Below are positions 1-64,000 of a stretch of DNA of 64,000 bases, in pieces. A model generated the notes under the pieces. It saw nothing but the letters and a program-made list of their open reading frames with translations, made no database searches and was not told the origin of the DNA. The translations under genes were made by a program, and so were the position numbers. Source of the DNA: Carpediemonas membranifera BICM. Lineage: Eukaryota; Protista; Fornicata. Numbering within the stretch: the stretch's first letter is position 1; the number at the start of each line of letters is the position of its first letter. The stretch is from NCBI GenBank assembly GCA_019828565.1, contig JAHDYR010000069.1, positions 1 through 64,000 of the forward strand, given 5' to 3'.

Positions 1-3000
1 TCTCGAGCTCGGCCTTCTCGGCCTGAGGGTGTCGCGCTCCTCGGAGGTGGAGGCGATCTTGCTCTCTTCGAGCTCGGCCTTCTCGGTCTGGAGGGAAGTT
101 GTCTCTGGAAGCCTGGTAGCTTTGATCTGCTCGAGCTCTGGCCTCGGCCTGGAGGGTGCTGTCGCGCGCCCTCGGTGTCGAAGCGATCTCGCGAGCTCTG
201 GAATTTTCCCGCCTGAAGCGCCGCGGGCCGCAGCGCGATCTTGCTCTCTCGAGCCTCTGGCCGGGCCGGAGGGTGTCGCGCTCCTCGGGAGGTGGAGGCG
301 ATCTTGCCTTCAAGCTCTGCCTTCTCGGCGCGGAAGGGCACTGCTTCGAGCTCGGACTCGGTCGCCTTGCCGTCCTCGAGCATCTCGGCGATGCGGGTCT
401 CGAGGCTCGTCTTGGTTATCGGTCGCGGCGTCGTGAGCGACTTCGAGCTCGGCCTTCTCGGCCTGGAGGGTGTCGCGCTCCTCGGAGGTGGAGGCGATCT
501 TGCCTTCGAGCTCAGCCTTCCTCGGCCTGGAGGGTGTCGCGCCCTCGAGGTGAATGCGACCTCTGTTCTCTCTGAGCTCAGCTCTCGGCCTGAGGGAAGT
601 CGCGCCTGGAGGTGAGGCGATCTTGCCTTCTCGAGCTCAGCCTCTCGGCCTGGAGGGTGTCGCGCTCCCTCGGAAGTCGAAGCGATCTTGCCTTCGAGCT
701 CAGCCTTCTCGGCCTGGGAAGGTGTCGTGCCTCGGAAGTCGAAGCGATCTTGCTCTTCTGAGCTCGGCCTTCTCGGCCTGGAGGGTGTCGCGCCCTCGGG
801 AGGGAGGCGACCTGCCCTGAGCGTCAGCCCTCCTCCTCGGCCTGAGGGTGTCAAGTGTCTCGGAGGTGAATGCGATCTTTAGCTGCCTTCGAGCTCAGCC
901 TTCTCGGCCCACCAGGAGGGTGTCGCGCTCCTCGGAGGTGGAGGCTTGATCTTGCCTTCGAGCTCGGCCTTCTCGGCCTGGAGGGTGTCGCGCTCCCTCG
1001 GAGGTGGAGGAGGCGATCTTGCCTTCAAGCTCTGCCCTTCTCGGCGCCGAAGGGCATCAAGCTTCTCTTCGAGCTCGGACTCGGTCGCCTTGCCGTCCTC
1101 GAGCATCTCGGCGATGCGGGTCTCGAGGCTCGCTCGGCAGCATCGGTCGCGGCGTGCCCGAGCGACTTCGAGCTCGGCCTTCTCGGCCTGGAGGGTGTCG
1201 CGCTCCTCGGAGGTGGGAGGCGATCTTGCCTTCGAGCCTCAGCCTTCGGCCTGGAGGGTGTCGCGCTCCTCGGAGGTGAATGCGATCTTGCTCGAGCTCA
1301 GCCTTCTCGGCCTGGAGGGTGTCGCGCTCCTCGGAGGTGGAGGCGATCTTGCCTTCGAGCTCAGCCTTCGGAGGTGTCGCGCTCCTCGGAAGTCGAAGGA
1401 TCTGCCTCGGGCTCTGAGCGCTCGGCCTGGAAGGTGTCGCCCTCGGAGGTCGAAGGCGATCTTGCCTTCGAGCTCAGCCTTCTCGGCCTGGAGGGTGTCG
1501 CGCTCCTCGGAGGTGGAGGCGATCTTGCCTTCGAGCTCAGCCTTCTCGGCCTGGAGGGTGTCGCGCTCCTCGGAGGTGGAGGCGATCTTTGCTCGAGCCT
1601 TGCTCTTCTCGGCCTGAGGGTGTCGCGCTCCTCGGAGGTGGAGGCGATCTTGCCTTCGAGCTCAGCCTTCTCGGCCTGGAGGGTGTCGCGCTCCTCGGGA
1701 GTCGAGCGATCTTGCCTGAGCTCAGCCTTCTCGGCCTGGAGGGTGTCGCGCTCCTCGGAGGTGGAGGCGATCTTGCCTTCAAGCTCTGGCCTTCTCGGCG
1801 CCGAAGGGCACTCGATAGCTTTCTCTCGAGCCTCGGACTCGGTCGCCTTGCCGTCCTCGAGCATCTCGGCGATGCGGGTCTCGAGGCTCGTCTTGGCATC
1901 GGTCGCGGCGTCGAGCTCGGCCTTCTCGGCCTGGAGGGTGTCACGCTCCTCGGAGGAATAGAGCGATCTTGCCTTCGAGCTCGGCCTTCTCGGCCTGGAG
2001 GGTGTCGCGCTCCTCGGAGGTGGAGGCGATCTTGCCTTCGAGCTCAGCCTTCTCGGCCTGGAGGGTGTCGCGCTCCTCGGAGGTGGAGGCGATCTTGCCT
2101 TCGAGCTCAGCCTTCTCGGCCTGGAGGGTGTCGCGCTCCTCGGAGGTGGAGGCGATCTTGCCTTCGAGCTCAGCCTTCTCGGCCTGGAGGGTGTCGCGCT
2201 CCTCGGAGGTGGAGGCGATCTTGCCTTCGAGCCTCAGCCCCTCTCCTCGGCCTGGAGGGTGTCGCGCTCCTCGGAGGTGGAGGCGATCTTGCCTTCGAGC
2301 TCAGCCTTCTCGGCCTGGAGGGTGTCGCGCTCCTCGGAGGTGGAGGCGATCTTGCCTTCGAGCTCGGCCTTCTCGGCCTGGAGGGTGTCGCGCCTCGGGA
2401 GTGGAGGCGATCTTGCCTTCGAGCTCAGCCTTCTCGGCCTGGAGGGTGTCGCGCTCCTCGGAGGTGGAGGCGATCTTGCCTTCGAGCTCAGCCTTCTCGG
2501 CCTGGAGGGTGTCGCGCTCCTCAGTCGAAGCGACTCTTGCCTTCGCAGCTCAGCACCTCTCGGCCTGCCGAGGGTGTCGCGCCTCCTCGGAAAGCGCGAG
2601 CGATCTTGCCTCGAGCTCGGCCTTTCTCGGCCTCGGAGAGGTGTCAGCGCTCCTCGGAGGTGGAGGCGATCTTGCCTTCGAGCTCGGCCTTCTCGGCCTG
2701 GAGGGTGTCGCGCTCCTCGGAGGTGGAGGCGATCTTGCCTTCGAGCTCGGCCTTCTCGGCCTGGAGGGTCGCGCTCCTCGGAGGTGGAGGCGATCTTGCT
2801 CTCGAGCTCGGCCAGCTCGGCCTGGAGGGTGTCGCGCCCTCGGGAGGTGGAGGCGATCTTGCCCTTCGAGCTCCGCCTCCTCGGCCTGGAGGGTGTCGCG
2901 CTCCTCGGAGGTGGAGGCGATCTTGCCTTCGAGCTCAGCCTTCTCGGCCTGGAGGGTGTCGCGCTCCTCGGAGGTGGAGGCGATCTTGCCTTCGAGCTCA

Positions 3001-33729: not shown

Positions 33730-36700
33730 CTTTTATGTACATCATCATGCCATTGCTGGCGGCTAGACTAGGCTAGCCACCCAACTCATACTCCCAAAGG
33801 GGAACACCGTCCGCAGATCTGAGGTAAGTAGAGTAATTACAGTGGAGTATGGCGGCTCCATGCCTGCCTCAAGTGCCAGCAGCTCCTTGCTGCTTTCGGC
33901 TGGACCGGGCGTCTCCTTGACGGCCTCCGGTGCGATGGTTTATGGTGTTAGAATGGGAACAGGGTGTTTGCAGTTTGTCGGGTTTGACGAGGGTGGTTGC
34001 GGATAGCCTCCCCGATGTAAGGCCGGAGAGAGTTGCCGTTAGCCCAGGTTCCGAGTTGGAGTAAGGTCTCTATCGGTGTGCCTGCTAGTGCCAGTTCGGA
34101 AGCCGCTCCCTTGCGGAAGCTGTGTAGGCCAATCCTGTTGTCGTGGAAGACTGTGCGTAGCTCCTCTCGCATTCGTCGCATTGTGCACGGGGTCTTACGG
34201 CTGACCTTCGATGAGGATGTGATCGCGCGCCAGATGCAGGCGTCCGGTGGAAGGTTCAAGCCTCGTACCCATCTCTTCAGGGCCAGCGCTGGGTTGAATG
34301 GGCCTAGTAGGGTGTTGGGTAGTGACTTAGTGACCTTTGCAAGCGTCTTTGTGCGACCAAGGAGCAGCTGGGCGTCCCCGTTTGCCTTGAACACGATGTC
34401 AGCGCTCGTCAGGTTGAAGATTTCAGCTCCGCGGCTCACGGTCAGGTAAGCAATCGCGGCGAATAGTGTCGCTTGGTACGTCGCGATGTCGCTGTTCCTG
34501 GACTTGATGGCCCTGATCATGTCCTCCCCTTGTGACTGGGGCTGACCCGCCTGTCATGCCGGTGGTGTTGGCGTTGTCTGCTATGCCTCTTCTGATTTGT
34601 GGACAGTAGGTGCTGGGGGTCCAGTCGGAAAAGAGTGGGGCGGCCTTCTCGATCCAGTATCCCTTTCGATCGACCGTGGCTGGTGCATTATACTCGGCCT
34701 CGTCCTCCAGGAAGGCTCGGTACTCATCGGTGTCGTCCTCGTGTGGGTCGCGGTACTCAAGGAATGCTGTAATCCATCCGGCTACTGAGCGCTTGGACTC
34801 GTCTCGGCGCATGTGAGACAGTATTGGGTGCTGCAGGATTCTGGAGAACGTGTCCTGAAGGCGAGAGCTATGAAGCGGATGGTCCCGTTTGGCCTGGAGA
34901 GACGGTCTAGGAGTTGTTGGTCCTCTGATGCGAAGTCGTCTTTCGGTACTGAGAAGGGAATCTTGCATGTCGCGTGCGCCTTGAGTTGTTGGAGTTCGGG
35001 GCTCGTAATGTCTGGCACGACGAGGAAGCATGCTGAGGTCCACGAGTTCGGAGGGGATGTAGTCGGGGTCGTTAAGATCGGTAGGAGGGTCTGCCATGTC
35101 CGTCCCAAGGTCATCGGGGACGGGTGTGGCGCGGCATAAACGCGGTGTCCGCGCCAGTCCCTGAACAGGCCGTCCGGCCAGTGTTCGATGGTAAACCCTG
35201 GGAGGCGTAGAGTGCGGTCTGGGTGTGCTGTAGCGTCCACGTCGACGGGGCCCCAAGTCTCGAGAATTGTCTCCAGCACGTGGGGTGGGGTGGACAACCC
35301 GCGTGACAGTCGGTCTGCGGCGAGATTGAGGTGGCCTGGGGTGTGTCGAGCGTGTATGAGGAGCTTCTTGCGTTCCATCTCCTTGTAGAGTATCCTGAGT
35401 GTCTGTAGCGCCATCGGGGGGCCTTTGAGCTGCCCTCCTTGTTGATCCAGGCGACGCACGAGCTGTTGTCTGAGAAGACCGTGAGATTGCGCTCTGAGTC
35501 CTGTGCTGGTATGATGCGTGAGCCAAAGAGGACTGCGGCGAGCTCCTTCACGTTGATAGATTGTTCCGCCAGTGCGCCCTTGAAAGAACCGTGGGAGTTC
35601 GCGGACGTGTTGGTCCACTGGGCTCCCCAGCCTGTGCCCGACGCATCTGTGGAAATAATCAGCTCTAGTTGCTGGTCCTGAGACCATAGGTTCTTCAACT
35701 CGGCGAAGGAGCGGGTTGGTCGGACGGCCAGGAGCTGCAGCCACTCCTTGAGGTCTGCTGTGTAGGGGTGGATGTCGACCCAGTTCTCCGTGGCAGAGGG
35801 GAGCGTGCGGAGCTTCAGGGTAGCCCGTCTTGCAGAGGTGGCGAAGAAGGAGAGCTTGCCTACGATCTTCGCCCAGTCTTTCGCGCGGATGCGCTTCTTG
35901 ACGAGTGCTTCTGATAGGGCCTCTGCGTACCTCTTGGCCTTGTCGGCGGGGAGACGGATGGTGTTGGACGTGGTGTTCAGGAGCAGGCCAAGGAATTCTA
36001 TGCACTGGCACGGTGTTAAGATGCACTTCTCCAGCGACGGGATGAGGCCCAGTGCCTCCATCGTCTTGATGATCTTGGGTATTTCCTTGCTGAGGTGGTC
36101 TCTGCTGTCGGCTGACAGTAAGAAGTCGTCGAGGTAGACGTTGACGATTACCTTGTGGCGGAGGGCGATGACCTTTGCTACCTGGACCATAGCGGACTGG
36201 AAGAAATAAGGCGCGGCGGTCCAACCGAAGCCTAGCGTGCGGTATTGGAACGCCCGACCGTCGGGCAGAGCGATGCCCAGGAGCGGTTTGTCCGAGTCTC
36301 TGATGGCCAGCTGTGAGTAGCCGGATCTTAGGTCTATCTTGGCCATCCAGGCCTGGCTGGAGAGTGTGTTGATGGCACGACGTATGCCGAACAGACGGAA
36401 GGAGCGGCGTTCGCGTGTGACCGTGTTCAGCCGCCTCAGGTCGTGGATCACTCTTATGTCTTCCCCCTTGGGGACAGCAAACAGCGGGGCGCTGTGCTTG
36501 AGCTGACTGAGGGGCGTCGGCTCGATGATTCCTTGTTGTGTCATTGATTCGAGCTTCGGAAGTATCCTCGGGTCGATGGTCCTCTGTGGGGCTGCCGGTG
36601 GTGGAGGCGCTGTGATCTCGACGGGGATTCCGTCTCGTACCCGCGCTACTACTGCTGGAGCTACCCTGAATTGTTCCCACACCCGCCATCGCGAACGGGT

Positions 36701-37905
36701 TGATGGGAATATTAGGAGCGGGCCCGGCGGCCGACGCTGCTGGAAAGAAAGAAGAAAGAATTTAATGTGTCCTGCTACTCGTCCTGCTGTGTAAGCTGAA
36801 TGTCACAGTTTGTGTCACCCCTTCGAGGAACGCCTAAGCGTGTTGGTACCTCTACAGAGCACACCTAACACTTCCTAAGAGGGCGTGAACAACGGCCGTC
36901 AAGGCCTAGCTGGTACGCTAGAGGGATCCTATACATGGCCACATTAATACCCCCAAAGTTAGGCTAACCCAGGTCTTACTCTTAGGGGCCCTTTGGGTCC
37001 CAGGTCTGCCTGGCACCTACAAAGCCTTGCCCTGCACGCTGCTGTCAGGGACCTTCCGTACGTTTCCCCTCTCCCCCGGGTCCCCTAGGGAGGTCCTGGG
37101 GTTTCCTCGACCCGCTCGCCATGTTTTCAGGCACCCGCCAGGGCGGGGTCGGGTCTAGAGTTCGCCGTACCAGCTGGGCCGGGTTAGGAACCCACCGACG
37201 CCGCGTAGGTAGACTTCCACGGACTTGCCGGCTGCGTTCGGGCTCATCTAGCGCTGTCCGATTTCACTCCAGGTTCCCATTATCGGGGGGGAGCTCCCAG
37301 GGGCGGTTGCCACGTCTTCCAGTGTTCCTGGCTAGGCGCCGGGCCACATCAGGATGGCCCTGCCTTCCCGGCAGGTTACCGACGGAGTGGGTAGCTTCTT
37401 GCGTCATCCAGTACCTCCGCCAGTCTGCCATGCATCATCCTCCTGGTGCGCCCCCCACTGTGTGGGGAGGGGGTACCCCTTGCGCGCCGGAGGGATGCGC
37501 CGGACTGCTTGTCCGGACGCTTGCGCCCTACTGGCCCAGCTGTTTTGCCAGGCCTTCCCTATTTCGTGCTTGTTGTATGCGGTTGTCCCTTAGTGGTCCT
37601 TTGCAGCCTTCCCTCCGCCTGGCGCTACCGGAACATGTGGTGTTGTCCTCATTGGTTCCAGGCCCGCTGCGCTTGGGGTCGGTGCTCGGGCCACCTTTCC
37701 AGGCCGCCCTGTGGGTTGGGCCTGTCCCCTCTTGGTGGTGGGGGAGTTGTTTCAAGTGTGATGCAGGCATCAGAGTGCTCCCCTTGCTGCGTGGGTTGGG
37801 TTGGGTGTGCGGCCGGGCGCTACCGGAACATGTGGGGGGAAAACACCTCCCGCCGGTTCCAGGAATGTTCCGCCCTGTGCCTTGTCTTCACCCAGGGCTT
37901 TCCTC

Positions 37906-40900
37906 CTAGGGGTCTGGGCCTGTTCTGAGGTTCATGAGGGCCTTTTTCCCGCATAATAGACCCTCCTTCACTGTTTCATCCTCCTGTTGCAGTAGCCAGT
38001 GGAGCTCCAATATGGCCCTGGAGTTATACCACTCCCCATCTGGGCCGTGCCGCAGCCTACTTGCCATGGTGTGTGTTGCCGCAGCTTCCCAGCACTGCTC
38101 CCACCCACTTGGGCGGCCGACGCCCTGGCACTCCGCTATGATGTGGCTTTGTGTTCCTAGCGGTTGGTCTTCCAGCCACCCGGCTACTGCCACTAGCGCC
38201 TGCGCCTGGGGGGGGTATAGTTGGAGGTAGTTGATCAATTCGCGTTCGGCTGCGAGTGTGCATATCGGGCATATTCTTTGGATACGGTCGCAGAGCATTT
38301 CCTGCCCAGGGTACCTCCTGCTTATGATGAGCGCGGCTCCTCGAGTTGTGTGGCTGTTGCTAGCGGAGGGGAGCGTGTTGGAGGCTGTTGCAACTACCCT
38401 CTTCAGCTCCCTCCTGAGCATCATCTCCCCTCTGATAATCTTTGGTTTCTTGGGTGCTCTCCCGCCTGCCATTGTTTGCATTGCCTCCGCAGCTAGCACT
38501 TCGGCGGCCGCCTTGGCTGTTCGGCTACCTTTGGTGGCGATGTCTCGTGCTGTCATCTTCCATCCCCCGGCTATTGCTCTGGGTCTGGGTCCGTGAAGGT
38601 CGCTAGGGGCCAGATCTAGTACGTTGTCTGCCCACTTGTTCAGCTTTCCGATAACGGACTTGGGGTTCGCTCTTCCCCAGTCGAAGTCCGCTAGGGGCGA
38701 TGGGCGGTCAGGGTCCCGGGCCGATTCGCGGATTCTAACCGCTCTTACACCCATGTCCGCTTCCCAGCACATCCATCCCATCATCAGGCGGGCGACACCC
38801 CCTCCACCGGGTCCGGTTCCCGCCATGAGTCCTCGCCAGTCGTTCCAAAGCCTTCTGCCTCCTGGGACTTGGCCCCAGATTTCGATTCCGAATTCGATCT
38901 TTGGCCATAGGAAGGTGCGGAGGATGGACTCGGAGACAGCCGCGGGCGTGGAGCCTTTAGTCCATCCCACTCTCCGGGCGAGGGCGATGTACTTGTTCGA
39001 CTGTTCTCTTTTTCTTTTGCGATGCATGCGCTGAGCGGATGAGGGAGCCACTTGCTATCCAGAGTCCCAAGTATCGGCCTGACTCCGCTGCTCGGGTGGC
39101 CTCCCCTTGAATTCGCACTTCCGCATTTGGATTGGTACTTATGACGATGTTCTTTCCTGGGCTGATACACAGCTTGTGTGCCACTATCACTTCCACCATT
39201 GCGGCGGTGAGGGACTCCGCATCATTTTCTTTCTTTGCCGAGATGCTCGTATCGTCTACGAACATTGCTATGATGCCATTCCCGGGTCTGTGGTGGGTGG
39301 GGGAAGCTTCGGGTCTGGTATCTCGCCGTACTGTATTCTGAGTGACGCCTGGCTAATCCAGTTGGCCGTAAATAGTATGAATAGGGTGGGGGCGACCACG
39401 CAACCTTGCTTGACTCCTAGGTTCGTTTCGGACCATAGGTCGGATCCCCTTACCGCAATGTAGGTCCTCTCCATTGTGCTTTGTACTGCTCTGACTAGGT
39501 GGGGGTGTACACCCATATTGATCAGCTTGCTGACTAGGATGTCCCTGGGAACCGTGTCGTACGCCTTTGCAATGTCGAGCAGCACGCTGGTCCGGTCTCC
39601 TTCTTGGTGCAGTTGGGTTAGGAGGGCGATGTGGTCTATGACTGTCTTTCCCTTCATGAAGCCGATCTGCTCTCTGGGGGTGTGCCTCTCAACTGTTGGT
39701 TTGAGCCTCCATTTGAGTACCTTCCCATATGCTCGGTAGAGGAGGGGGGTGAGTGAGATGGGTCGGTAGGATCCTGGCAGTAGCTTATCTTTCCCTATTG
39801 CAGTTTTGATCTAAAAGTGTCCACCTAATCATTGTCCCATCAAAGTTGTGGACACAAATTGCCACTCGAAATGACGATCACGCTTGAAAGACGCAACGAA
39901 CTGAGATGTCTGATGGCCGCAGGTGTACCGAAGAGCGTTCTATGCTCTCTCTATGGGCATTCTAGAACCACTCTTCGTAGAATTCAAGCGATCTACGGGG
40001 CGCCTGAGGGCAAAAGAGTGGTGGAACCGCGCAAGCTAACGAGAAACATGCGCAACTACCTTGTTGACTACGTTAGATCAAACGAAGCAGCTCAGTTGAA
40101 GGATATTCAACAAGAACTTTTCGAAAAGTTCCAGGTTAGCCTCAGCACAGGATACCTCAGCCACGTCCTTAACCACGAGGAGGGCCTTGTCCTCACCGTC
40201 GGAGAGACTCGGTGGATGGAGCATGACCCAGAAAAGGCGCTCCGCTTCCGCTCATTTATGGTTACCGAGGCGATCCCGCACTATGGGCTGGACAAGCTCT
40301 GCTTCATTGATGAGACGTCATTCGACCCTCGTGGCCTTCGTGTGAAGAGAGTCCGTGGCCCGCGGGGTCAGAGAACCATCGCGCGTCGCTCAGGTGCTGC
40401 CCTGGGTAAGCGATACTCGGTCGTAGCAGCCCTCACGACTTCGGGGATAGTTCACAGGCACATTACAAGCGGCACTTACAACGCTGACCTCTTCTGGCAG
40501 TTCATGATTGCTTTGCTACCACAGATTCCTGGATACTGCATCATCCTTGACAACGCGCGCATACACAAAGATGAGGAGCGAATCAACAACTTGTCCCGCA
40601 TTTATGATGTTCGTATTGTCTTCCTTCCTCCATACTCTCCCTTCTTGAACCCCATAGAGGTAGTATTCGGCCAAGTCAAGGCCTATGTCGCCACGCATTT
40701 TAAGGAAGAAGGCCGTTTGCCCAGTATCCTCCATGCCTTCGACCTGGTCAAGGACTCTGACATCCTCGGACTCTACGCCAAGCATGGCTATGCTTTGTAA
40801 ATGCTGTTTATTCAAGTAGCGCTTGGCTTTCGGCCACGGAAACATCAGAAGGCGACGGAGCTTCCTCAAGGCTAGCAACGAATGAGATAACGCGGGAGTA

Positions 40901-42794
40901 CACTTCTGGGCGGACGGGAATGCTGATGAAGGTCGGCTTTTGAGCCTCTCTACGGCGGGGGACGTAGTCGCTGGATGACGGTGTCGTGTGAGGGGTCATA
41001 AGACCGGCTGGTGGCGTAGCTACGGTTGCAGTTGCATTGTCGATTTCATATGCCCATGCCGCGATGAGTTTTCCAGGCAGCGAGCGCGAGAGCTCATTGT
41101 CTCGTACCAACTCCTTCATCCGGGGCGTTAACACCGCGTCAACGGCTGCTTGATCGCTGTTTACCTCCAATACGTTTTTGAATGGGCATCCATTGGCGTT
41201 ATGACCGGTAACACGGCACCTACTGCATGTTACAGTTCTCGACATCAGCTTCCCATCAAAAAGTTCTTCTCCCAATCAAACTTCTGGACACTTTTAGATC
41301 AAAACTGCAATACTTTGTGTATCGGGGAGATGGAGGCGTACTTCCACGTGGTGGGTAGTTCCCCAGACTCGTATACTTTCTGGAAGAGGCATGTGATTGC
41401 CCTGTAGGCCGCCTGGGGGAGGTCTCTCAGACATTCGCCCGTGATACCATCCGGGCCTCCTGCCGATGATTTCTTCAGGGACTTGATGGCGGCCGTGACC
41501 TCCTCCTCCGTGGGGGGTTGATCAGTTGTTTGGGCCGCCGGGATCTGGTCCCAACTAGGTGCTATGCCACTACTGACTTGGGCGTATTGCCTCTGCAGCT
41601 CCCTAGCTATCTCGTTTTCCCTTGTTAAGATCGACCTCTTTCCTCTGAGCATCGCCGGTAGCCCTGCGTGTTGTTTCTCGTTCCAGAACCTGTGGACCTG
41701 GTTTGCTATGACCTTCTTGGTGGTCTTATACCCTGCCCTTGCGCTGTTTTCCACCTGCTGCGTCCACTCCTCCTTGAAGCTTTTCCATGACTTCTGGAGC
41801 TCGTTGTTCAGGGTTCGCTTGATTTCCGCGGCCCCCGCTTTGTTCCATCGGGCTAGGATGAGTTGCTTCCATACGTTCTCCGGGATCCTTTTTGCGATCT
41901 CCCTGGTCTGACGTTCCTAGCGGAAGTTTGAAATCCCACCGATAAGAGTTCCCGTATTTGGTACTCGATTGTATCTACATGGAGCTCCACATCGGGTTGC
42001 GGCCATTCCCTTGCCCTTTCCCCGTTGCGCTCTGGGAGGACATTCCAGGTGGTTGTTCCTGGGATTTCCAGCTTGGGTTTGGCCGGTTGTTTCTTCCAAT
42101 GCGGTTCGTCCCAGGTTAGCTCCACTGCCCTATGGGGGAGCCCCAATGCCCCATCTCAGCTTTGTCAATGACTCTAGCTTTGGCCCTCGTGATCCCCCCA
42201 GATACAGCTGCATAATCCAGCGTCGAGGTGGTATTCCCACTCATGTATGTGTGAGACGAGGGGAAAACTAGGTCTAGATTGTTTCGCTGTAGTGTGGCGC
42301 TGGTGGCATGGCGCAGGCTCCGCGGGTCACGGTTCCAGTCCCCCATGATGATTATCTCGAAGCCGTGGTACTCTCTGACGATGTTTTCCAGCTGTTGGTC
42401 GAAGCGGTCTAGCTCCGCTGCGCTGCGGTCACTTGGAGGGGCGTATATGTTGATGACTGCGATAGCCCTTGAGGTTTCGAGGATGCTAACTTGAACTCGG
42501 GGGTTCGTGCCGTCAGATACTCCTACATCCCAGGTTGCCTGTGAATGTGGGCTGATCACCGTGGCTACGCCTAGGTTAATCTTGCCCTTTCGAGCCTTGA
42601 TGGGTTTGGCGTGCCCTGCACATGCGTATTGTAGGTCCGCCCAACAGGGGGACTACGGAGTTACCGTACCTGAATGTTTCCTGCAAGAGGAGGGCGTCCG
42701 GGCTCGTGTGCTTGCGAAGCGCTACCGCTATAGATCCGCTGTAGTCTTCATTGCCCGTTAAGTGTCCTTGGCTGTTAAGGGAGACTATTCGCAT
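37906..42794 (-). CDS. LINE ORF2: APE endonuclease + RT + C-terminal Cys/His motif (frameshifted, interrupted by Tc1)
   Basis: APE motifs MRIVSLN, LLQET, INIYAP, GDWN, LDY and PHRAV. RT motifs AGGPDG, PIHK(VG)..YRPISL (restored across the Tc1), LDIAKAYD, GVKQG, FVDD and YLG. C-terminal CPIC...HIIAEC. Confidence 0.88.
39871..40800 (+). CDS. DD35E transposase
   Basis: HTH-like N-terminus and FIDET ... ILDNARIH ... LPPYSPFLNPIE, with 35 residues between the second D and the E. Confidence 0.93.
   Translation: MTITLERRNELRCLMAAGVPKSVLCSLYGHSRTTLRRIQAIYGAPEGKRVVEPRKLTRNMRNYLVDYVRSNEAAQLKDIQQELFEKFQVSLSTGYLSHVLNHEEGLVLTVGETRWMEHDPEKALRFRSFMVTEAIPHYGLDKLCFIDETSFDPRGLRVKRVRGPRGQRTIARRSGAALGKRYSVVAALTTSGIVHRHITSGTYNADLFWQFMIALLPQIPGYCIILDNARIHKDEERINNLSRIYDVRIVFLPPYSPFLNPIEVVFGQVKAYVATHFKEEGRLPSILHAFDLVKDSDILGLYAKHGYAL
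40808..41245 (-). CDS. Accessory ORF in the Tc1 element with a CCHC zinc knuckle
   Basis: MSRTVTCSRCRVTGHNANGC (CX2CX4HX4C). Fills the rest of the element and converges on the transposase stop. Confidence 0.65.
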   Translation of the reverse strand: MSRTVTCSRCRVTGHNANGCPFKNVLEVNSDQAAVDAVLTPRMKELVRDNELSRSLPGKLIAAWAYEIDNATATVATPPAGLMTPHTTPSSSDYVPRRREAQKPTFISIPVRPEVYSRVISFVASLEEAPSPSDVSVAESQALLE

Positions 42795-43449
42795 TCAGGT
42801 TGTTACTGCCTTAACCTGCACTCCTTATTCTGCACTACCTGCACACTTTCATCTTGTTGTTGGGGTTTAGCATCTGCATAGTTGCCTTCCCAATGGGTGA
42901 GCGCCTATGTCGTCGTTGTTTAGCACGTTGGGTGGGCCGCTTCCCGCCCTGTGGGTTGTTGGTGGGCGGCCCGGGTAGGCGTCTTCTTTGCCCTTGATAT
43001 TTCTCCAGGACCCAGAAGCATGCGCCATTCACATGGGGTGCTTGGCCAGAACGGCTGCTTCCTCCAGAGTCCCCAGACGTGGCCCAGGTTCCCTCTTGGA
43101 GCTGACCTAGGGTGTACCACCCCTTTCACTGGCCGCGCCCTCGCGGTGCTTGTCGGGACTTTCGTGCCAGTCTCTATAGCGCTTCTGGCCTCGCACATTG
43201 GCAGCATCGTTACCTAACTACGCATAGGTGGGAGCGACTCCTTTCGGCGCCCCCTCCCAAGGCTGGAGTTCCAGCCTGCCGGACAGGCGGGTCCTCGAAG
43301 GCGTTCCAACTGCCTCTTACCCGCCCCCCGGTCCCTGCGGGGAACAGGGGTTTTAAGAAAAGAAAAGTCACCCGGGCATTGGCGCCAGTACAGCCCTTCT
43401 GGCGGGCTCCAACGCTGCGCCTATTCCGGCGCCTTCACTTCACCTAGTC

Positions 43450-46400
43450 CTACACTAACGTGCTATATATACACATCCCTTTAGACTCTGCACTCTTCCC
43501 TCCACTGCTTTGGTATGGCTCGTTACTCATGCATCTCTTGATCTGGTTCGTCGCTCTCGTGCTCCATTCCGATGCGTAGGAGCTCTTCTTCCTCGTCGCT
43601 TCCGTTGGCGGCGGCAAGCGCCTCCTCAAGCCTGGCCTCGAGGACTCTGTTTGTTTCACGGAGCCTGAGGCTGGCTCTTTGAAGGCCTCCGATTTCTCGG
43701 CGATGCGCTGGAGGCGCTGGCGCTCGCTCGCTCCTCTTGCTAGGGCTTCCCTTTCCTTGGCCAGCTGGCCTTGGAGGTGGGCAACCTCGTTGTTCAGCCG
43801 GGAGACTTCCTCTTCGTAATGGCTCATGATCCGCTGCCGCTCTTCTTCAGCTCTTCGCTCCACCTCCGCTTGGAAGAGGGCTTGGATGTAGGCACCCATC
43901 TGATCGACCGTGCCCAGTCTTGGGTTTGGGGGCCTCTTCCCTTCGGGGCCACGCCCGGCGGGGGCCGGTGCTCGAAAGCCTGGCTCAGAGGCATCGCCGG
44001 GGGTTGGCCTCTTTGTGAGGCGTGAGGATCGCCTGTCCCGGGGCCGGGTGGGGGGGTTCATTCCTCTGGGAGTGGGGTAAGCAGGGCTTACCTGGTGCGC
44101 ATTAGGGGTGATGATTGCCCTTGGGGTGGGGTGGGCGGGGGTTACCTGGCGCGGGTTGGGGGTGGGGTTTGTTTCCCCTTGGAGCCTGCTGGGGGAGGGG
44201 GTGGCGTTCACCTTCCTTTGAGATGGGTTCGGGGTGGGGACCTGTCGGTTCTCGGTGAGCGGGCCCTCAAGCAGCCCTAGGGCCGGCCACTCCATGCCTT
44301 GGTGAATCTCGTTGGTGAGCCTCTCCCGGTGCTCTTCGAGGCAGGCTCTAAGCGCGGCCCTTGCCGCGGTCACAGCCTCTTTTGCTCTCGCTGCGACCTG
44401 TGCCCGTCGTTGTTCTGGGTGTACGGGAAGTCCCACAGGCGGATGGGGGTAGTCTCATCATGGGACTGCATCCCAGGGCCAGGGTGCCGTCGTATTGGGG
44501 TTCGCCCAAGGCGCTCGGGCGGCGTCTTCCAGGCTCCCCTCCTTGTTCTACTGTGCGGATGCCCCAGTCTAGGGGAAGAACCGAGGGGAAGAAGTTGACA
44601 TAATGCCTGGGCCCTCTATCTTGGCGCCGGAGTTCCGCGCTTACGATGAGTTTCGGGACGCCCGCTGGTGCTCTATCGCCGATGTTCACCAGGCAGTGGG
44701 TGAGCCGGTGTCTCAGCTGCTGGGCTGAGCCCCCATGCATCATGTCATGCTTATGGAGCGGGACCAGCGAGGCTGCCTGGGATAGGGTCAGGAGCTCGGG
44801 GTGGAGTTTGACCGGGAGTTGCTCCATGACCCTGGGGGTCCAGGGTGGTACGGTTGCCATAGAAGTCTGGCCAGTAGCCCTTCTCCCTTGCTACGCGGCG
44901 CCTACCGTTCCACTCGGATAGGAGCTCCACGACCAGGGGTCTCGTGCTTGGGCAGGAGTCCGGGCTGAGAACGGCTACGCCCCTCCTTTCAAGGACCCTT
45001 AGGATTCCTTTTCCTGTGCTGAACTCTTGCGCGGTCGTGTTGGCCATGTGGATTTCCTTCGGACGCGGCTTGGTGGTAAAGATCACGTGCTGTAGTTGCC
45101 CCAGGGGTGTGATGACCTCTCGCCCTCTATGGCGGTTGATCTCTACAGCCAGGTCTGGGACCCCGTGTCCTACTCTAATGATGGGGCTTTTGTGCCCCCG
45201 TCACTTTCCCTCCTCGTGCGATTAGTTCCGCTCCCACATCAGCCCAGGTCCACGGGTTATACAGCATGTGGATGGCCAGGGAGAGTCTTGTGTAGAAGAG
45301 CGATACATCCGCAAGCGCACAGTGACAGTAGGCTGGTGCGTTTCTGTGATAGGGGCACAGCCCCTTGGGTTCCCTTCTCCTTTGCTGGTCGCGGGTCCAG
45401 ACCTTGGCCTGCTCGGCTGCCTTCTGGTCCTCCTGTGGGAGGGTCTCTCGGACCGGGCGGTCCTCCTGGGAGGGGGGGTAGAAGAGGGTGAGGGTGCTAT
45501 TGAGACGGGGGTACACCGCATCTAGGCCGGCTTCATCGATTAGGTGGGTGGCTACCCATGCCCTGGCCGTGGAATCCGGTACGTATTTGGCGCTCGTGAG
45601 GACACTTCGTTCAGCTTCCACCCCTTTGGCAGTCAGGTGGATGAACGCGTTATGGTGTCCTTCGAGACGCCGGAGGGCATCGATCATTTCCGCGCACCAT
45701 GTGGTGCTGTTTGGGAATGTGCTTTCGAATCCCTGGGGGCCTGCCCAGTGGTGATGTCGACGAAGGTGGCTGGGGGCAACCGTGGAGAATTCTTGAGCTC
45801 ATCAGAGCCTGGTCGAGGTCGGCCACCCGAATATCTTCGCCTAACATCCCGTGCAGACTGGCGACGATATTCCCGTTGGCGGGGTCAAAGACTATGACCG
45901 CCCCTTCGCATATGACGGCCTCATCCCCCGCCTTGGATGCGGGTTTGGACGCTTCGAAGTCAATGCATCCGATCAGCATCCTCTTGCCCTGCGGGTTGGT
46001 GAGCGGGCAGGACGGGGGGAGTCTGCTGTTGGCTGACAGTTCTCTACCCCTTGGCGGGTTGACGTCACTATCACTGCCAGGGACTCTTCTGGCCGAGTCG
46101 TCGGCGTTGGGCCGGGGGCCATCTTGGGTACCCCCGGTCTCCGAGCCCGCACTTTCGCCGCTGGGCATGGTGGCGGGGTTCCCCCCGCTAGTTGGGTTCC
46201 AACCTGCTTCGCCCCCCAATGAACGAGGGGGCGACTGGATCGCCCATGTTGGGTTGGCCAGTGGTCGGGTCGCCGCCGTTGTGCGGGGCAACGCCCAGGT
46301 TGCCCCTGGTGGGTGGGTCCGTCCTTGGGCCGCCGTTGGGCGGGCTATCACCTGCACTTGCTCTGCCATTATTCGGTGGGGGGGTGACCGGGTTGCCCTC

Positions 46401-47864
46401 GTGGGGTGGGTTGTCGGTTTGCTCGTTGCCCTTGGGCGGGCCGTCCCCTGTGGATTCGGTGGCGAGCAGCTTGGTACCCTGGTCCGCCATCCAGATGTTT
46501 GCGATCCTGCTAACGAGGGTGGAAGCGTCGCAGAGGTCCGGGTGGATGAACTCAGGGGCCGGCATTGGCCGGGTAGTAGTATCCCATGCGGCCCACAGCT
46601 CTTTGAAGCCCGGAACCGTCCAGCGAAGCACTAAGTCTTCGGCCTCACTGCGCGCTAGCTCGTCGCCGGCAATGTTGAGGGCTGAATCCGTGGGTGTCCT
46701 GCTAACCAACACAGGTCTGGTCACCCCATCGGTCCTGCTGTAGACAGCTATCGCGGAGAACATGCCACCTTCCCAGGGCTTGACGGCCTGTCCGTCAAGG
46801 GGGGGGAAGCCTCCTGCTGGGGGTCTGGGGCTAAGGGGGACGGGGGCATCCTCCCAGGCCCGACCTAGGGCCACCCACTTGTTGTTGACGTTGTTGTGGG
46901 CTCTGTCCGCACCTGGCGCTTTCGCTGAGCCGGCTGTGGCTTGGCCGCCTGCCTTGAGGAGCCAGGCGGCGCTCTGCTGGCCGAACCTTGTCCTGATCCC
47001 AGGCCCTGTGAGGCTTTGGTGACCTGCGGCCTTGAATGTGCTGGCAACTAGCTCGAACAGCAAGGATCTAGCCGGTGGCGGGCTTGATACCTTGAAGTTG
47101 GCGGCGTTATCCCTCGAGAAGATCACTGTGGTGTTGTTGCACTTGGCGAGGATGGAATCGGCTGCTCTTCGGACTTTTTGCCACTCTTCGGTCGTAGCTA
47201 AGCGTTTTCCAAGCTTGGTGAGCTCTGTTCCAGCTTCGTCTACATCATTCCCCCGGCCCATGGCTTGTTGGGGGAACTTTGTGTTTGTGGCCGAAATTGG
47301 TCTCGAAAAGTCGGAGGGGGAAAGTCGGCATGAATCCCCCGGAGGGGGAGCCCTCCCTGCCCGCCTCGCCTGTAGGCGCCGTTGCCGGCGCTCGTAGGCT
47401 GGGAAACCCGGGGTCAGGGAGTAATCGGCCTTGGAGGTGAACATCACGAAGGCCGGCCCGCATCGGGGCAGTGGCCGGCGCTGTTGGTCCTCGCGGTGGA
47501 TTTTCCAGGCCGCCTGGCTTACCCACCATGGCCTTCCGGTTATCAGGGCGTAGTGGTATAGCAGGATGTCATTTTCTAGCATTTGGGTAGCCGTTATTTC
47601 CCTTTCTCGGCTGGGATTCTGCCACCACTGTAGCTGGTGATCCACTCCTGGGGGGAAGGGATCCTTTATCTTGCTATACCCTTTTAGGTCGCCGTACATC
47701 CGGATCAAGTCGGCGATTTTCTCGGTTCTCGTGCGCTCCTTGCGTAGAGGAGGCCCTATGGGATGCTCGGGGAGGAGATCTTCTGCTCGGGCAACGTACC
47801 CGCCCTGTGGGTTCCTGGGAAACGCGTCCATTGCCGGCCGGTGGCTCGGATGAGGAGTGTGCAT
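43450..47864 (-). CDS. LINE ORF1 (~1450 aa, several frameshifts) containing a Maelstrom-like DEDDh nuclease domain, Pro-rich linkers and a coiled coil
   Basis: Chain of overlapping minus-strand ORFs: 46188-47864, 45650-46369, 45175-45687, 44751-45086, 44348-44860, 43450-44436. MAEL-type motifs at ~45280-45985. Confidence 0.7.
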
Positions 47865-47992
47865 TTTAGTGCTCCATCACCTGATCACACCATAGCCTTG
47901 TGGCGTTGCACGTTGGCCTTTCCGAGCAGGGGCGGGGAGGTGTGGCCTATTGCCTGAGATGCGGGGTCGGTTGCGAACCTTGTAGCCATAAT

Positions 47993-48773
47993 ATGGGTTC
48001 ACCACATTTGGTTCCTGTTACACCCATTAGCCCGCCTGGCGACTACCACCAAGGCCCAGGCATTGCCGCAGCTAAGGTTCAGCCTTCTAAGGTACCTGAT
48101 TCCCCTCTTGGCCCCTCATGCCGATCACCTCCAAGGCCCAGGCATTGCCGCGGCGGAGCCCCAGACCCCTAGAGAGGGCTGGGGGTCGGATTCTTCCACC
48201 ACATCGTCCTCTGTGGAGGAGCTGCCCCCCGGGTCATTGGCATTGCCTTCCTCCCGCAGCGCCCGCGCCTCTGCTCCCAACCTGGTGGGATGGGGCCTCA
48301 GGAGTCCTCAACGCCGACTCTTCCGCTCCTTCCAGGGGAAAGCCGTCCCCCGCCGCCTCCAGCTGGCCCGGTCCCCTGCTTCCCCCGGTCCTCACAACGG
48401 CGAGGGCGCTGCCCCGTTTGTCACGCCATTGGCTTCCTCCCCAGCTGGGGCTCGCACCGTTCGTCAGCCTGTGGCTCCACTTGCGTCAGCCCTCGACGCT
48501 CTCAGCACTTTGGATCGCATCGCCATGGACTGGCACTCGTGTGCCTATGCCTTCGTGGACATGCTCCATGAGGGGACCGACGAGGATCAGCCTGTCGAGA
48601 ACCTACAGGCCATTTTGGCATTCCAGCGCACTTCTCAGTCCCAGATGGTTATGTATCGCAGCAGCAGGGGCGCTCTTGAGCGGGCCCTTAGGCAGTATGT
48701 CCCTTCGGTTTCCCATTTCCTTGCCGACGGAAGCCCCTCAGTGGAGTTCCTGGGCGCCGGGACTCCTCAGTAA
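47993..48773 (+). CDS. Antisense ORF inside the LINE 5' region (~260 aa, one frameshift)
   Basis: MGSPHLVP.. joins ORF 48063-48773. The peptide repeat QGPGIAAA (21-bp direct repeat at 48049-48069 and 48131-48151) becomes in-frame after one indel. Helical-looking C-terminus. Confidence 0.45.
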
Positions 48774-50199
48774 ACACCCAGGGTTGAATGGGGGTTGAGA
48801 CCATGTTGCTGCTGTTCCTTGCGGTATCTGCCTACCACTCGGGTTGCTGGGCCCCGGCATTCTCCCCTTCTCCCAGCGGGGGAGCGCGGCCACAGGGCGC
48901 CATTTGGGTTTCCCTCCAGTTGCGCGTCATTCCTACTAAATTCATGAGTTCATACCTTGGTTTCGGCTTGGTTGCAGTGGTGAGGGCCCTTGGCATGTTG
49001 CTGGGGGCTCCTCTGGACGTTCTTTGCCCTGTGGGTTGAGGAACGTCCGGGCGGTAAGCTTCCCTTGGTCTTTTGGATGGTAATATCCCATCAGACCGCT
49101 CACCGGGGGCTCCATGCCCATACGGGTTTCGTTGCCCCAGAGGGTGCACTTTAGGGAGCACAGAGAACCAACCCAAGCACAGCGCCCGTCCGCTAGCGGG
49201 TTATACAAGGCAGGCAGGGTGGTTTCAGGGCGACGGCTCGTGCCTCCGGCGCTCGCATCTTCCAGTTTTCTGCCACCGGCCCGTTTCGCTTCCGTTTGAC
49301 TTGGTCTCAGGCGATCTCATCGAGGAGGCTAGAGAGAGGCCTCGTGCGCCCTATGGGTAGAAGTGGTAAAGAGTTATGCTGTTCCTGCTGGTATTCCCCG
49401 AGCAGGAGAACTCCCGATGCTGAATTGACCAAAATGTGGCATTCCACGCTATAGGTCACCGCCGCTCTGTTTTGAGCTCTATAAACCTCGAAAGAATCGC
49501 CAATGGCTATCATTCCTCGGCGCTTGGCTTTGTTCCGGTTGGTGATTCCAACTTTCCATACCGGACATTTTAACTGTGGCCGACGCTGCTGGAGCCCTGC
49601 TCCTGAAAATTCCGACGCTTACGCTTGCCCTTAGTCTTGGCCTTAGCGAGGATCGTCTCGATCTCCATCTCAGACTTCGGGGGCGTGGCTCGCAGGGCTG
49701 CAGTGGCGTAGTCACAGACGTTGTCGTCGTAGTCGTCCTTGAGGAGAAGGACCTTGAACCGGCTCAGGAGACGGAGCAGTAGATCGTTCACGTCGATTGA
49801 GTGCGGGTCCGCGGTCGTCAGGAGACGCATGATCTCGCGTAGGAACTTGGCTTCGTCGCGGGGCCCGTACCTCTTGGGGAGCTCCAAATCGAACAAGAAG
49901 GACGGAAAGCCTTGGAAGGTTCCCTGGGTTGCTTGCTCATCGGTTTCTAGCTCGTACTCTTCTTGTTCTACCTCCCTCTGGATGGATCTTTCCTCGATGT
50001 TCTCCATCTTCGTTTTCATGAACTCCAATGTGGCAGTTACGTTGTTGGTAAACTTTCGGAACTCTTCCTGGGATACAGGAGGTTCTGCGGACGTGCCCGA
50101 TGTGCCTTCGGGCATTCGAAATTCTGATGCCATAAACTGCACGTTTCCGTGCGCCCTCTCGGGCGTCTCAGCACCCCGGGTGCCAATGGGCTCGAGTGG

Positions 50200-63015: not shown

Positions 63016-64000
63016 AAAAAAAAAAGAAAGAAATTTATGGTGCTTGGATTCTGACCCCGGACTGAGCTTGTTTCCCGTTGTCTTGGAGCTGAGTGCCCCG
63101 GGGTACTGCCTATTTCCCGTGGCAAACTGGTCAGCAGCGTTTGCCTTGGGCTTTCGGTGCTACTGTCTCCGCGGAAAGCCGATTCCAATCGCCCCAGAGG
63201 CCCTGCGGCCATCTCCGTGCAAATATGCTTTCCTGTCTCCCTGAAAGTCCGGCAACTATCCGGGGAGCCTGGGGGTCTGTCCTCGGGGCATTGACAGGCA
63301 GGATCGTCCTGCAGAACCTTGACTATGACACTCCTTGCTTCCCTGCAGTCCTTGTAGAGCCGTTCAGCCACGGCACCCTCTCGTCTGTCCGGTTCCCCAA
63401 TTCCATGCCCCCTCGACTCTGTTAAGAGGCCTACCCGAAGGCGGGGGAAAGTGACTAAGTCCATGCTGTCTACCCCGGTTAGGTGGCGTGGGTCAGGGCA
63501 TGGGTGGTGTACCCCCAGGCACTAGGCCTGGTTGTCCTGTTACCCCTTACAACATTTCGCTTGCACTACATGTCCTTGGTTTCCCATGTCGTTAACAAGG
63601 GCGGCAGGGGCACCTGTGCCCCTCCGACCCCCGTGGCCAGTCCCTGCAGTTTCCTTGGGGTCCCAACGAGTGGTGCAACCATATGAATATGGATTTCCTT
63701 GACCTTATCCTTGCTCTGTCCTTGTTGCATGTCCTTTCTTTCTTATTTCTGGTCTGTCCTTCCTGTTAATTCCTTGCAGTCGTTCCTTCCCTTGCTTTTG
63801 GTTCCTGGCTACCGGGATACGTGGGGCCTTTCCTCACTGATCCCAGGAGCTTAGCACCAGCGAGGGTGGTCCATGGCTGATTCCTTGTCCATCCCTTCCC
63901 GGTCCTGGAGTCAGGGGTTCATGACATGCTTCTATTCCACCTTGAAGCTGTTGTAAACCTTTGCCAGTTCCCGTAGTCCTGCCGTGAGGCCTTCCCAAAT
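63016..64000 (-). mobile_element. 3' end of a second LINE (tail, ~0.9-kb 3' UTR, last codons of ORF2)
   Basis: aaaaaaaaaagaaagaaattt tail resembles the one at 36745. The frame from 64000 reads IWEGLTAGLRELAKVYNSFKVE* (stop at 63932), similar to the first LINE's ..VKEGLLCGKKALMNL. Confidence 0.55.

Follow-up and report, generated by a model that had tools for sequence, protein, structure and literature searches.

Does a LINE retrotransposon of Carpediemonas membranifera encode, within its first gene, a nuclease domain related to Maelstrom (MAEL), the protein that silences transposons in animals? The question arose from a single copy within a 64,000-nucleotide stretch of strain BICM (assembly GCA_019828565.1, contig JAHDYR010000069.1, positions 1 to 64,000 of the forward strand), hereafter called the window. 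An earlier note, based on the sequence alone, had proposed that, after the correction of two 1-bp indels, the ORF1 region of this element reads as a MAEL-type nuclease domain. First, we translated the minus strand of window positions 45100-46400 and recovered the corresponding peptides in three frames. Frame 1 runs ...CIDFEAS...ICEGAVIVFD...SLHGML...RILHG, frame 0 covers a short stretch and frame 2 runs ...AKGVEAE...LCPYHRNAPAYCHCALADV. We then aligned the window copy with a sister copy that has an open frame (L003, 99.6% identical) and observed five differences in 1.2 kb, namely four 1-bp homopolymer-length differences and one substitution at 45968. The two indels placed at ~45780 and ~45735 in the earlier note are those at 45777 and 45740. 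The open copy (L003:940-2199, 419 aa) reads exactly the reconstructed text, so no hand correction is needed, and all analyses used natural open copies. Since the assembly is Nanopore-based, the indels of the window copy may be assembly errors.

The features of the element are listed in the table below. The window copy is 99.6% identical over its whole length to a copy on another contig (C54), apart from a foreign insert that is absent from the C54 copy. The target-site duplication is exact and the 15-mer occurs only twice in the window. The element has no terminal repeats, a simple 3' tail and many dispersed copies (99.2-99.9% DNA identity over the domain region on many contigs). It is a young APE-type LINE. 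A homologue search returned only unnamed relatives and the LINE clade could not be assigned.

Features of the LINE copy in the 64,000-nucleotide window
Position	Strand	Feature	Basis or remark
36744..49577	-	Whole LINE copy, about 11.3 kb without the foreign insert	Recent insertion into the gag-like ORF of another retroelement
49578..49592	.	Target-site duplication, 5' copy	CCAGCAGCGTCGGCC on the minus strand
36729..36743	.	Target-site duplication, 3' copy
47865..49577	-	5' region ahead of ORF1, about 1.7 kb	Between the element start and the first long ORF
46188..47864	-	N-terminal part of ORF1 (558-aa open frame in this copy)	No recognisable domain; one frame with the nuclease domain in another copy (L012)
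46217..46217	-	Frameshift site	G-run one base longer than in L003; separates the N-terminal ORF from the domain in this copy
45258..45979	-	Maelstrom-like DEDDh exonuclease domain of ORF1	Exo I D-x-E, zinc Glu on strand 2, Exo II Glu, C-x2-H, Exo III H-C-x3-D; split over three frames in this copy
45777..45777	-	Frameshift site	C-run one base shorter than in L003
45740..45740	-	Frameshift site	C-run one base shorter than in L003
45191..45191	-	Frameshift site	A-run one base longer than in L003; causes the stop at 45175-45177 just after the domain
44348..45086	-	Second conserved ORF1 module (motifs KGIL.. and ..P.DWG)	Fold unknown; structure prediction failed (pLDDT 41)
43450..44436	-	C-terminal part of ORF1 with a coiled-coil stretch	Weak coiled-coil family hits only; same feature in ORF1 of assembly GCA_002919055.1
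42116..42794	-	ORF2 apurinic-type (APE) endonuclease domain	In two frames in this copy; homologous ORFs of sister families hit Exo_endo_phos and Exo_endo_phos_2
41311..41754	-	ORF2 segment between the endonuclease and the reverse-transcriptase core	Cut by the foreign insert
39798..41310	+	Foreign Tc1/IS630-type DNA transposon, not part of the LINE	C54 copy joins 41311 directly to 39797; 322-aa ORF reads as a DDE transposase by eye
38957..39797	-	ORF2 reverse-transcriptase core, including the F-V-D-D motif	RVT_1 in sister families
37906..39051	-	ORF2 C-terminal region with a C-x2-C...H-x4-C motif	Read by eye
36744..36760	-	3' tail, short (TTCT)-type simple repeat

To determine whether the domain is peculiar to this copy, we searched the genome and found it in more than 160 places, in at least six divergent LINE families. 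The window peptide gave 147 matches, and 20 more were found in a family in which the domain is fused to the endonuclease in one ORF of up to 1748 aa. At least four more families occur in assembly GCA_002919055.1, the contig count and sizes of which fit the Carpediemonas frisia metagenomic bin (PMC8516963; PMC5437931), although this is only our inference. The domain always lies upstream of, or fused to, an APE endonuclease and reverse transcriptase. Indeed, the domain-bearing ORF1 lies directly upstream of an ORF2 with Exo_endo_phos, Exo_endo_phos_2 and RVT_1 matches in four sister families (B, C, D and E) and in GCA_002919055.1. The domain is also the best-conserved part of ORF1, being often the only ORF1 stretch alignable between families. 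For the four pairs with a defined dS, NG86 dN/dS was 0.13-0.36 in the domain against 0.34-0.57 in the rest of ORF1; these ratios are rough because dS is close to saturation. Together with the invariance of the catalytic and zinc residues described below, these results indicate that the domain is not evolving neutrally.

We next investigated its homology. Pfam does not see the domain: the window pieces, open sister copies and ORF1s of five families gave no Maelstrom, RNase_T or other nuclease hit, even at E 10, and scans of the whole genome with PF13017 and PF00929 gave nothing, although such scans do not show absence. No separate host MAEL gene was found in these searches. However, an exhaustive HMMER scan of 1.84 billion representative proteins returned only 15 hits, all of them LINE ORF1s except one Rhizamoeba protein (E 6e-4), which matches Pfam Maelstrom at 5.7e-19. 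Comparison of a LINE-only profile with this protein using hhalign gave 98.5% (E 1.8e-15 over 178 columns), and comparison with a second Pfam-positive protist MAEL protein gave 95.8% (E 7.3e-9). The predicted structure has an RNase H-like DEDD exonuclease fold (strands 1-3, helix A, strand 4, helix B, strand 5, helix C), and its five best structural matches are solved MAEL domains, although the margin of MAEL over RNase T is only about 1 Z unit. Two of our profiles (A1 and A2) gave only chance hits against PDB sequences, and of 114 pattern matches found in metagenome contigs with A1 none was confirmed. A viral structure library yielded only generic phage and giant-virus DEDDh exonucleases. Considering that the domain falls outside the Pfam model, we refer to it as MAEL-like or a distant member rather than a member of the Pfam family.

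The residues support this relationship. Using the numbering of L003:1207-2025, the exonuclease residues D7, E9, E124, H220 and D225 and the zinc ligands E25, C209, H212 and C221 are invariant in all copies without a local frameshift. The positions of the exonuclease residues on strand 1, the start of helix B and the start of helix C agree with the predicted fold, and E25 sits on predicted strand 2, as in Bombyx MAEL (PMC4408791). These motifs are not due to chance, as they are invariant in 20 distinct full-length domain sequences from families only 23-32% identical to the window family in this domain. The earlier note, which had reported all six positions of the EHHCHC signature (PMC2628886), is supported in its main interpretation but calls for corrections. 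Across families, only the four zinc ligands E-C-H-C are fully conserved: the first additional His is kept in 18 of 21 rows of the residue table and the second in 14 of 21, being Thr in the other 7, while the window family has both. In addition, the Exo II acid is Glu rather than the usual Asp. The functions suggested in the note (a decoy, or degradation of small RNA or dsRNA), as well as the direction of transfer (captured versus source), are still hypotheses.

Taken together, we favor, with moderate confidence, the explanation that the very long ORF1 protein of these LINEs contains, as an integral and ancient module, a 3'-5' exonuclease domain of the DEDDh class with the Glu-Cys-His-Cys zinc site that otherwise marks only MAEL domains and the arenavirus nucleoprotein exonuclease. 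The amoebal MAEL protein and the Lassa nucleoprotein keep both residue sets and are active (PMC4408791), and we infer by analogy that the LINE domain is an active Mg/Mn-dependent 3'-5' exoribonuclease carried into the LINE ribonucleoprotein by ORF1p. A nuclease on the protein that coats the element's own RNA is a risk to the element, which argues for a restricted substrate or for no activity. Its most likely role, which is speculative, would be to remove double-stranded or antisense-paired RNA made from the element and so blunt small-RNA silencing by the host, as the arenavirus nucleoprotein removes dsRNA to avoid innate sensing. The host has two Piwi/Argonaute genes and an RdRP, but no RNase III domain was found with PF00636, and nothing bears directly on the anti-silencing role. 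A role in trimming RNA or DNA 3' ends during target-primed reverse transcription is nearly as likely.

It is possible, though we hold this view only tentatively, that the domain is an active exonuclease serving replication of the element rather than counter-defense, by trimming the 3' end of the LINE RNA or of the nicked target DNA for priming, or by removing the RNA strand of the RNA:DNA hybrid. ORF2 shows only endonuclease and RT domains, with no RNase H, and DEDDh enzymes such as RNase T and TREX1, which are close structural matches, act on DNA and on structured 3' ends. Moreover, the family with the domain fused to the endonuclease-RT polyprotein places it at the integration machinery. On the other hand, in most families the domain sits in ORF1p, which in studied LINEs such as L1 is probably made in excess of ORF2p and coats the RNA. 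There is no direct evidence for any substrate, and most LINEs manage without such a domain. A less likely alternative is a catalytically inert RNA-binding module. Metazoan MAEL domains bind single-stranded RNA without cleaving it (PMC4408791), ORF1 proteins need an RNA-binding domain, and no RRM or zinc knuckle was found in these ORF1s. However, metazoan MAEL lost the DEDD residues, whereas the invariance of D-x-E, the Exo II acid and H-x4-D across such divergent families is hard to explain without catalysis. It is similarly doubtful that the domain is a generic DEDDh (RNase T/Orn-like) exonuclease with a Cys/His pattern acquired by convergence. In favor of this view, the lowest Foldseek E-values are for RNase T, RNase T and 3'hExo are within about 1 Z unit of MAEL, the atlas neighbors by features and by shape are RNase_T and Rv2179c-like families, and the Pfam Maelstrom model does not match. 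Yet none of the very many generic DEDDh enzymes appeared in the HMMER scan, the hhalign link covers the whole domain, and all four zinc ligands sit at the MAEL positions (E on strand 2, C-x2-H, and C next to the Exo III His), a site reported to be absent from cellular DnaQ-like exonucleases other than MAEL (PMC7968707). Finally, although the window copy itself is frameshifted, a one-off transduction of a host gene or a read-through artifact is refuted by the open copies and by the presence of the domain at the same position in at least ten LINE families of two Carpediemonas-type genomes, with no stand-alone host copy found in our searches.

Among known systems, protist MAEL-domain exoribonucleases (e.g., Entamoeba histolytica EHI_192630; PF13017) share the DEDDh fold, both residue sets and the spacing (C-x2-H, then about seven residues, then H-C-x3-D), and the amoebal enzyme is an active Mg/Mn-dependent exoribonuclease (PMC4408791). 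They are encoded by cellular genes and lack a strongly conserved insert of about 25 residues (G-L-P-P-x-T-F...) found in the LINE domain, in which the Exo II acid is Glu. Metazoan Maelstrom, a host silencing factor of the piRNA pathway that binds RNA, carries an HMG box and lacks the DEDD residues, whereas the LINE domain keeps these residues, has no HMG box and belongs to the transposon itself. The C-terminal exonuclease of the arenavirus nucleoprotein (Lassa, LCMV) showed no significant sequence-level match and belongs to a negative-strand RNA virus, and its dsRNA specificity and immune-evasion role are shown for the virus only. The ORF3 of bdelloid rotifer LTR retrotransposons and Athena/Terminon elements is also a retroelement-borne 3'-5' exonuclease of the DnaQ-like superfamily, shared among divergent element families and of unknown role, and a Cys-His-Cys motif reminiscent of Maelstrom was noted in some of them (PMC5408684). 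However, it is of the DEDDy (RNase D-like) subclass and is a separate ORF in LTR and Penelope-like elements of animals rather than a LINE ORF1 domain in a metamonad protist. The esterase-type ORF1 proteins of CR1/L2/RTEX LINEs (cited in PMC5408684) likewise combine an enzymatic domain with a coiled coil instead of the usual RRM or zinc-knuckle RNA-binding domains, but the enzyme is an SGNH esterase, not a nuclease, and there is no homology.

LINE ORF1 proteins are known with RRM, zinc-knuckle, coiled-coil and esterase modules. In the literature we could search, the rotifer DEDDy ORF3 was the only 3'-5' exonuclease reported in a retroelement, and we found no earlier description of the domain presented here. 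Pfam misses this branch, and our alignment could seed a model for annotating protist genomes. A more far-reaching possibility, which we consider unlikely although not excluded, is that LINEs are a natural reservoir of the active form of the Maelstrom/arenavirus-type exonuclease. In that case, the transposon-silencing MAEL domain of animals, or the arenavirus immune-evasion exonuclease, would share its origin with, or derive from, a counter-defense nuclease carried by selfish elements, and in Carpediemonas this nuclease would actively degrade dsRNA or small-RNA precursors to escape Argonaute/RdRP silencing. The LINE domain is of a rare zinc-bearing type otherwise known from a host factor that silences transposons and from a viral protein that destroys dsRNA to hide from innate immunity. 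It provides a concrete, testable case of a transposon carrying a possible RNA-silencing countermeasure and adds a third, mobile context to the unresolved origin of the MAEL and arenavirus ExoN domains.

First, we translated the minus strand of window 45100-46400 and recovered the peptides given in the earlier note, although spread over three frames and, in the ORF list, over two overlapping pieces. A search of the genome of Carpediemonas membranifera with the second of these pieces found 147 matches, eleven of them at 96-100% identity. One sister copy (locus L003) has a single 419-aa open frame that reads exactly what the earlier note had reconstructed by correcting two 1-bp indels. A base-by-base comparison showed that the window copy differs from this open copy in 1.2 kb by one substitution and four 1-bp homopolymer-length changes, of which the earlier note had corrected two. 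Other copies carry different single-base indels at 99.2-99.9% identity. The genome has 24.2 Mb in 69 contigs, figures that match the published assembly, which was built from MinION R9.4 reads plus Illumina (PMC8516963). Homopolymer indels in a repeat present in many near-identical copies are therefore plausibly assembly errors.

We then delimited the element by comparing it with a copy on contig C54, which is 99.6% identical to the window from 49576 down to 41311, then from 39797 down to 36734. The stretch missing from the C54 copy, which joins 41311 directly to 39797, is therefore a foreign insert, and its 322-aa ORF reads by eye as a Tc1/IS630-type DDE transposase. The ends of the element carry an exact 15-bp duplication, CCAGCAGCGTCGGCC, which occurs nowhere else in the window, and the 3' end has a short (TTCT)-type tail. 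Joining the flanks across one copy of the duplication restores the gag-like ORF of another retroelement (a tyrosine-recombinase/DIRS-type neighbour), and it is into the 3' end of this ORF that the element inserted. Along the minus strand, the element reads as a 1.7-kb 5' region, a long ORF1 (broken in this copy) made of an N-terminal part, the nuclease domain, a second conserved module and a coiled coil, followed by ORF2 with an apurinic-type endonuclease, a reverse transcriptase (RT) and a Cys/His C-terminal region. It is an APE-type LINE of about 11.3 kb. The second ORF1 module, located just after the nuclease domain, is conserved across families and in both genomes carrying the domain (motifs KGILL and F-I-P-R-D-W-G), but it has no Pfam match and its AlphaFold model failed (pLDDT 41). 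Of note, the last kilobase of the window is 98-99% identical to the ORF2 region of family C LINEs, and any ORF1 with the nuclease domain of that copy would lie beyond the window end.

Coordinates of the LINE, its nuclease domain and associated features. Positions are those of the window unless a locus (L), contig (C) or protein (P) is named; contigs are those of the C. membranifera genome.
Feature	Position	Strand	Remark
Target-site duplication	49578-49592 and 36729-36743		Exact 15-bp duplication
Tc1/IS630-type DNA transposon	39798-41310	+	Foreign insert within the ORF2 of the LINE
Overlapping ORF pieces	45650-46369 and 45175-45687		Second piece used as the query
Open sister copy	L003:940-2199		Single open frame
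Homopolymer-length changes	46217, 45777, 45740, 45191		45777 and 45740 corrected in the earlier note
Conserved insert of the nuclease domain	L003:1207-2025, residues about 67-91 (window about 45705-45780)		G-L-P-P-A-T-F-V-D..T-G..P, between helix A and the helix before strand 4
Second ORF1 module	44348-45086; L037:3605-4312; L003:2102-2842		
Flanking gag-like ORF	49570-50142 and 36500-36743		Interrupted by the LINE
ORF2 region of a family C LINE	63023-64000	-	Similar to e.g. L037:6543-7507
Domain in the same open frame as the endonuclease	C6:526698-527369, C9:344526-345197, C39:17338-18024, C4:59693-60379 (L054, L055)		Group of at least 20 copies
Annotated protein of that group	P0014, residues 172-400 and 661-822		Nuclease domain and Exo_endo_phos, respectively
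Two Piwi/Argonaute-domain proteins and an RdRP	C7:87108-88037, C65:23790-24737, C6:763156-764388		

To determine whether the domain belongs to the LINE, we analyzed its other occurrences. Besides the window family (A), the genome holds families B, C, D and E, whose domains are 27-52% identical to A. In each, an ORF1 of 720-1170 aa bearing the domain lies directly upstream of an ORF that starts with the endonuclease and continues into RT. A further group of at least 20 LINE copies has the domain in the same open frame as the endonuclease, and probably RT, with single ORFs reaching 1748 aa. An exhaustive HMMER scan of 1.84 billion protein representatives found only 15 hits, and the LINE proteins that we traced come from C. 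membranifera or from one other assembly, GCA_002919055.1 (run SRR4018424). In the latter, four divergent ORF1s of 1129-1250 aa carry the domain, and the assembly holds at least four divergent LINE families with it. Two of them (loci L047 and L050) are followed on their short contigs by an ORF with endonuclease and RT domains, while in the other two (L048 and L049) the downstream ORF is cut by the contig end. One contig of this assembly also carries a chromodomain gene. The contig number and sizes fit the C. frisia metagenomic bin (PMC8516963), from which we infer the identity of the assembly. In a maximum-likelihood tree of the domain, from which two locally frameshifted copies were left out, the LINE sequences separate from the two cellular MAEL proteins, and the single-ORF group is the sister of all two-ORF families. 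The families of the two genomes interleave, so several lineages predate the split of the two organisms, although long branches make the details unsure. Hence, the domain is really part of the LINE.

Sequence searches with Pfam gave nothing for any LINE copy, and searches of PDB sequences gave nothing either. The one non-LINE hit of the exhaustive scan is a 352-aa Rhizamoeba saxonica protein (P0015, E 6e-4), which matches Pfam Maelstrom at 5.7e-19 and, much more weakly, Rv2179c-like exoribonuclease. A profile made only of LINE domains (A3) aligned to this protein over 178 columns, from the first strand to the last helix, with an hhalign probability of 98.5% and E 1.8e-15. The same profile aligned to a second Pfam-positive MAEL protein (P0017) with 95.8% and E 7.3e-9. 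AlphaFold2 with that alignment gave a confident model (pLDDT 82, pTM 0.82), in which the order of strands and helices is that of DnaQ-like exonucleases. Foldseek found RNase T, oligoribonuclease, 3'hExo and Maelstrom. However, the structural margin of MAEL over RNase T is small and, on its own, the predicted fold shows only a DEDDh exonuclease, with which ESM Atlas neighbours agreed. What singles out the MAEL/arenavirus branch is the zinc site, composed of a Glu on strand 2, C-x2-H, and a Cys next to the Exo III His (PMC4408791), which other cellular DnaQ-like exonucleases are stated to lack (PMC7968707). In 20 distinct full-length domain sequences from both genomes, these four residues are invariant, as are the Exo I D-x-E, the Exo II acid (Glu here) and the Exo III H-x4-D, the only exceptions being two copies with local frameshifts. 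The other two His of the EHHCHC signature, all six positions of which had been read in the window copy in the earlier note, are only partly kept across these sequences. Interestingly, the LINE domains also share a strongly conserved insert (G-L-P-P-x-T-F...) that is absent from the two cellular MAEL proteins and that could be a substrate-binding arm.

We also investigated the constraint acting on the domain. Between distant families, it is often the only part of ORF1 that BLAST can align. Nei-Gojobori estimates gave dN of 0.25-0.59 in the domain against 0.55-0.97 in the rest of ORF1, with dN/dS ratios of roughly 0.13-0.36 against 0.34-0.57 for the four pairs with a defined dS. These ratios are rough since dS is 1.1-2.6, close to saturation. 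The domain is not decaying neutrally. No stand-alone MAEL gene was found in the genome, where the Pfam model finds nothing and the best matches of the amoebal MAEL protein are LINE copies.

Full-text searches for Maelstrom or DEDDh exonucleases in LINE ORF1, and for Carpediemonas transposons, found no description of such a domain. The nearest precedent is the DEDDy exonuclease ORF3 of rotifer LTR and Penelope-like elements, whose authors stated that such exonucleases had not been reported in retrotransposons before and remarked on a Maelstrom-like Cys-His-Cys motif (PMC5408684). Esterase-type ORF1 proteins are the nearest architectural analogue. An accessory enzymatic domain in a retroelement is thus already known, while the Maelstrom-like exonuclease domain in a LINE ORF1 is so far seen in one protist genus only.

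A protist MAEL protein with both residue sets is a Mg/Mn-dependent exoribonuclease, animal MAEL without the DEDD residues only binds RNA, and the Lassa nucleoprotein has both sets and is active (PMC4408791). The arenavirus enzyme serves immune evasion (PMC7968707). By inference, in the absence of expression or activity data, the LINE domain is an active 3'-5' exoribonuclease delivered by ORF1p. The parallel with the arenavirus nucleoprotein, an RNA-coating protein with this same nuclease type, makes the removal of dsRNA or antisense-paired RNA our first choice, although only a tentative one. A role in replication is nearly as likely, namely trimming 3' ends for target-primed reverse transcription or removing RNA from the hybrid in an element without RNase H, and it is favoured by the family in which the domain is fused to the endonuclease and probably RT. 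An inert RNA-binding role is less likely because the catalytic residues are invariant. The genome encodes two Piwi/Argonaute-domain proteins and an RdRP, so small-RNA silencing is plausible. Profile searches of the genome with PF00636 (RNase III) and PF00929 (RNase_T) gave no match, which does not show absence. In this context, the removal of dsRNA or antisense-paired RNA by the LINE domain would damp Argonaute/RdRP silencing.
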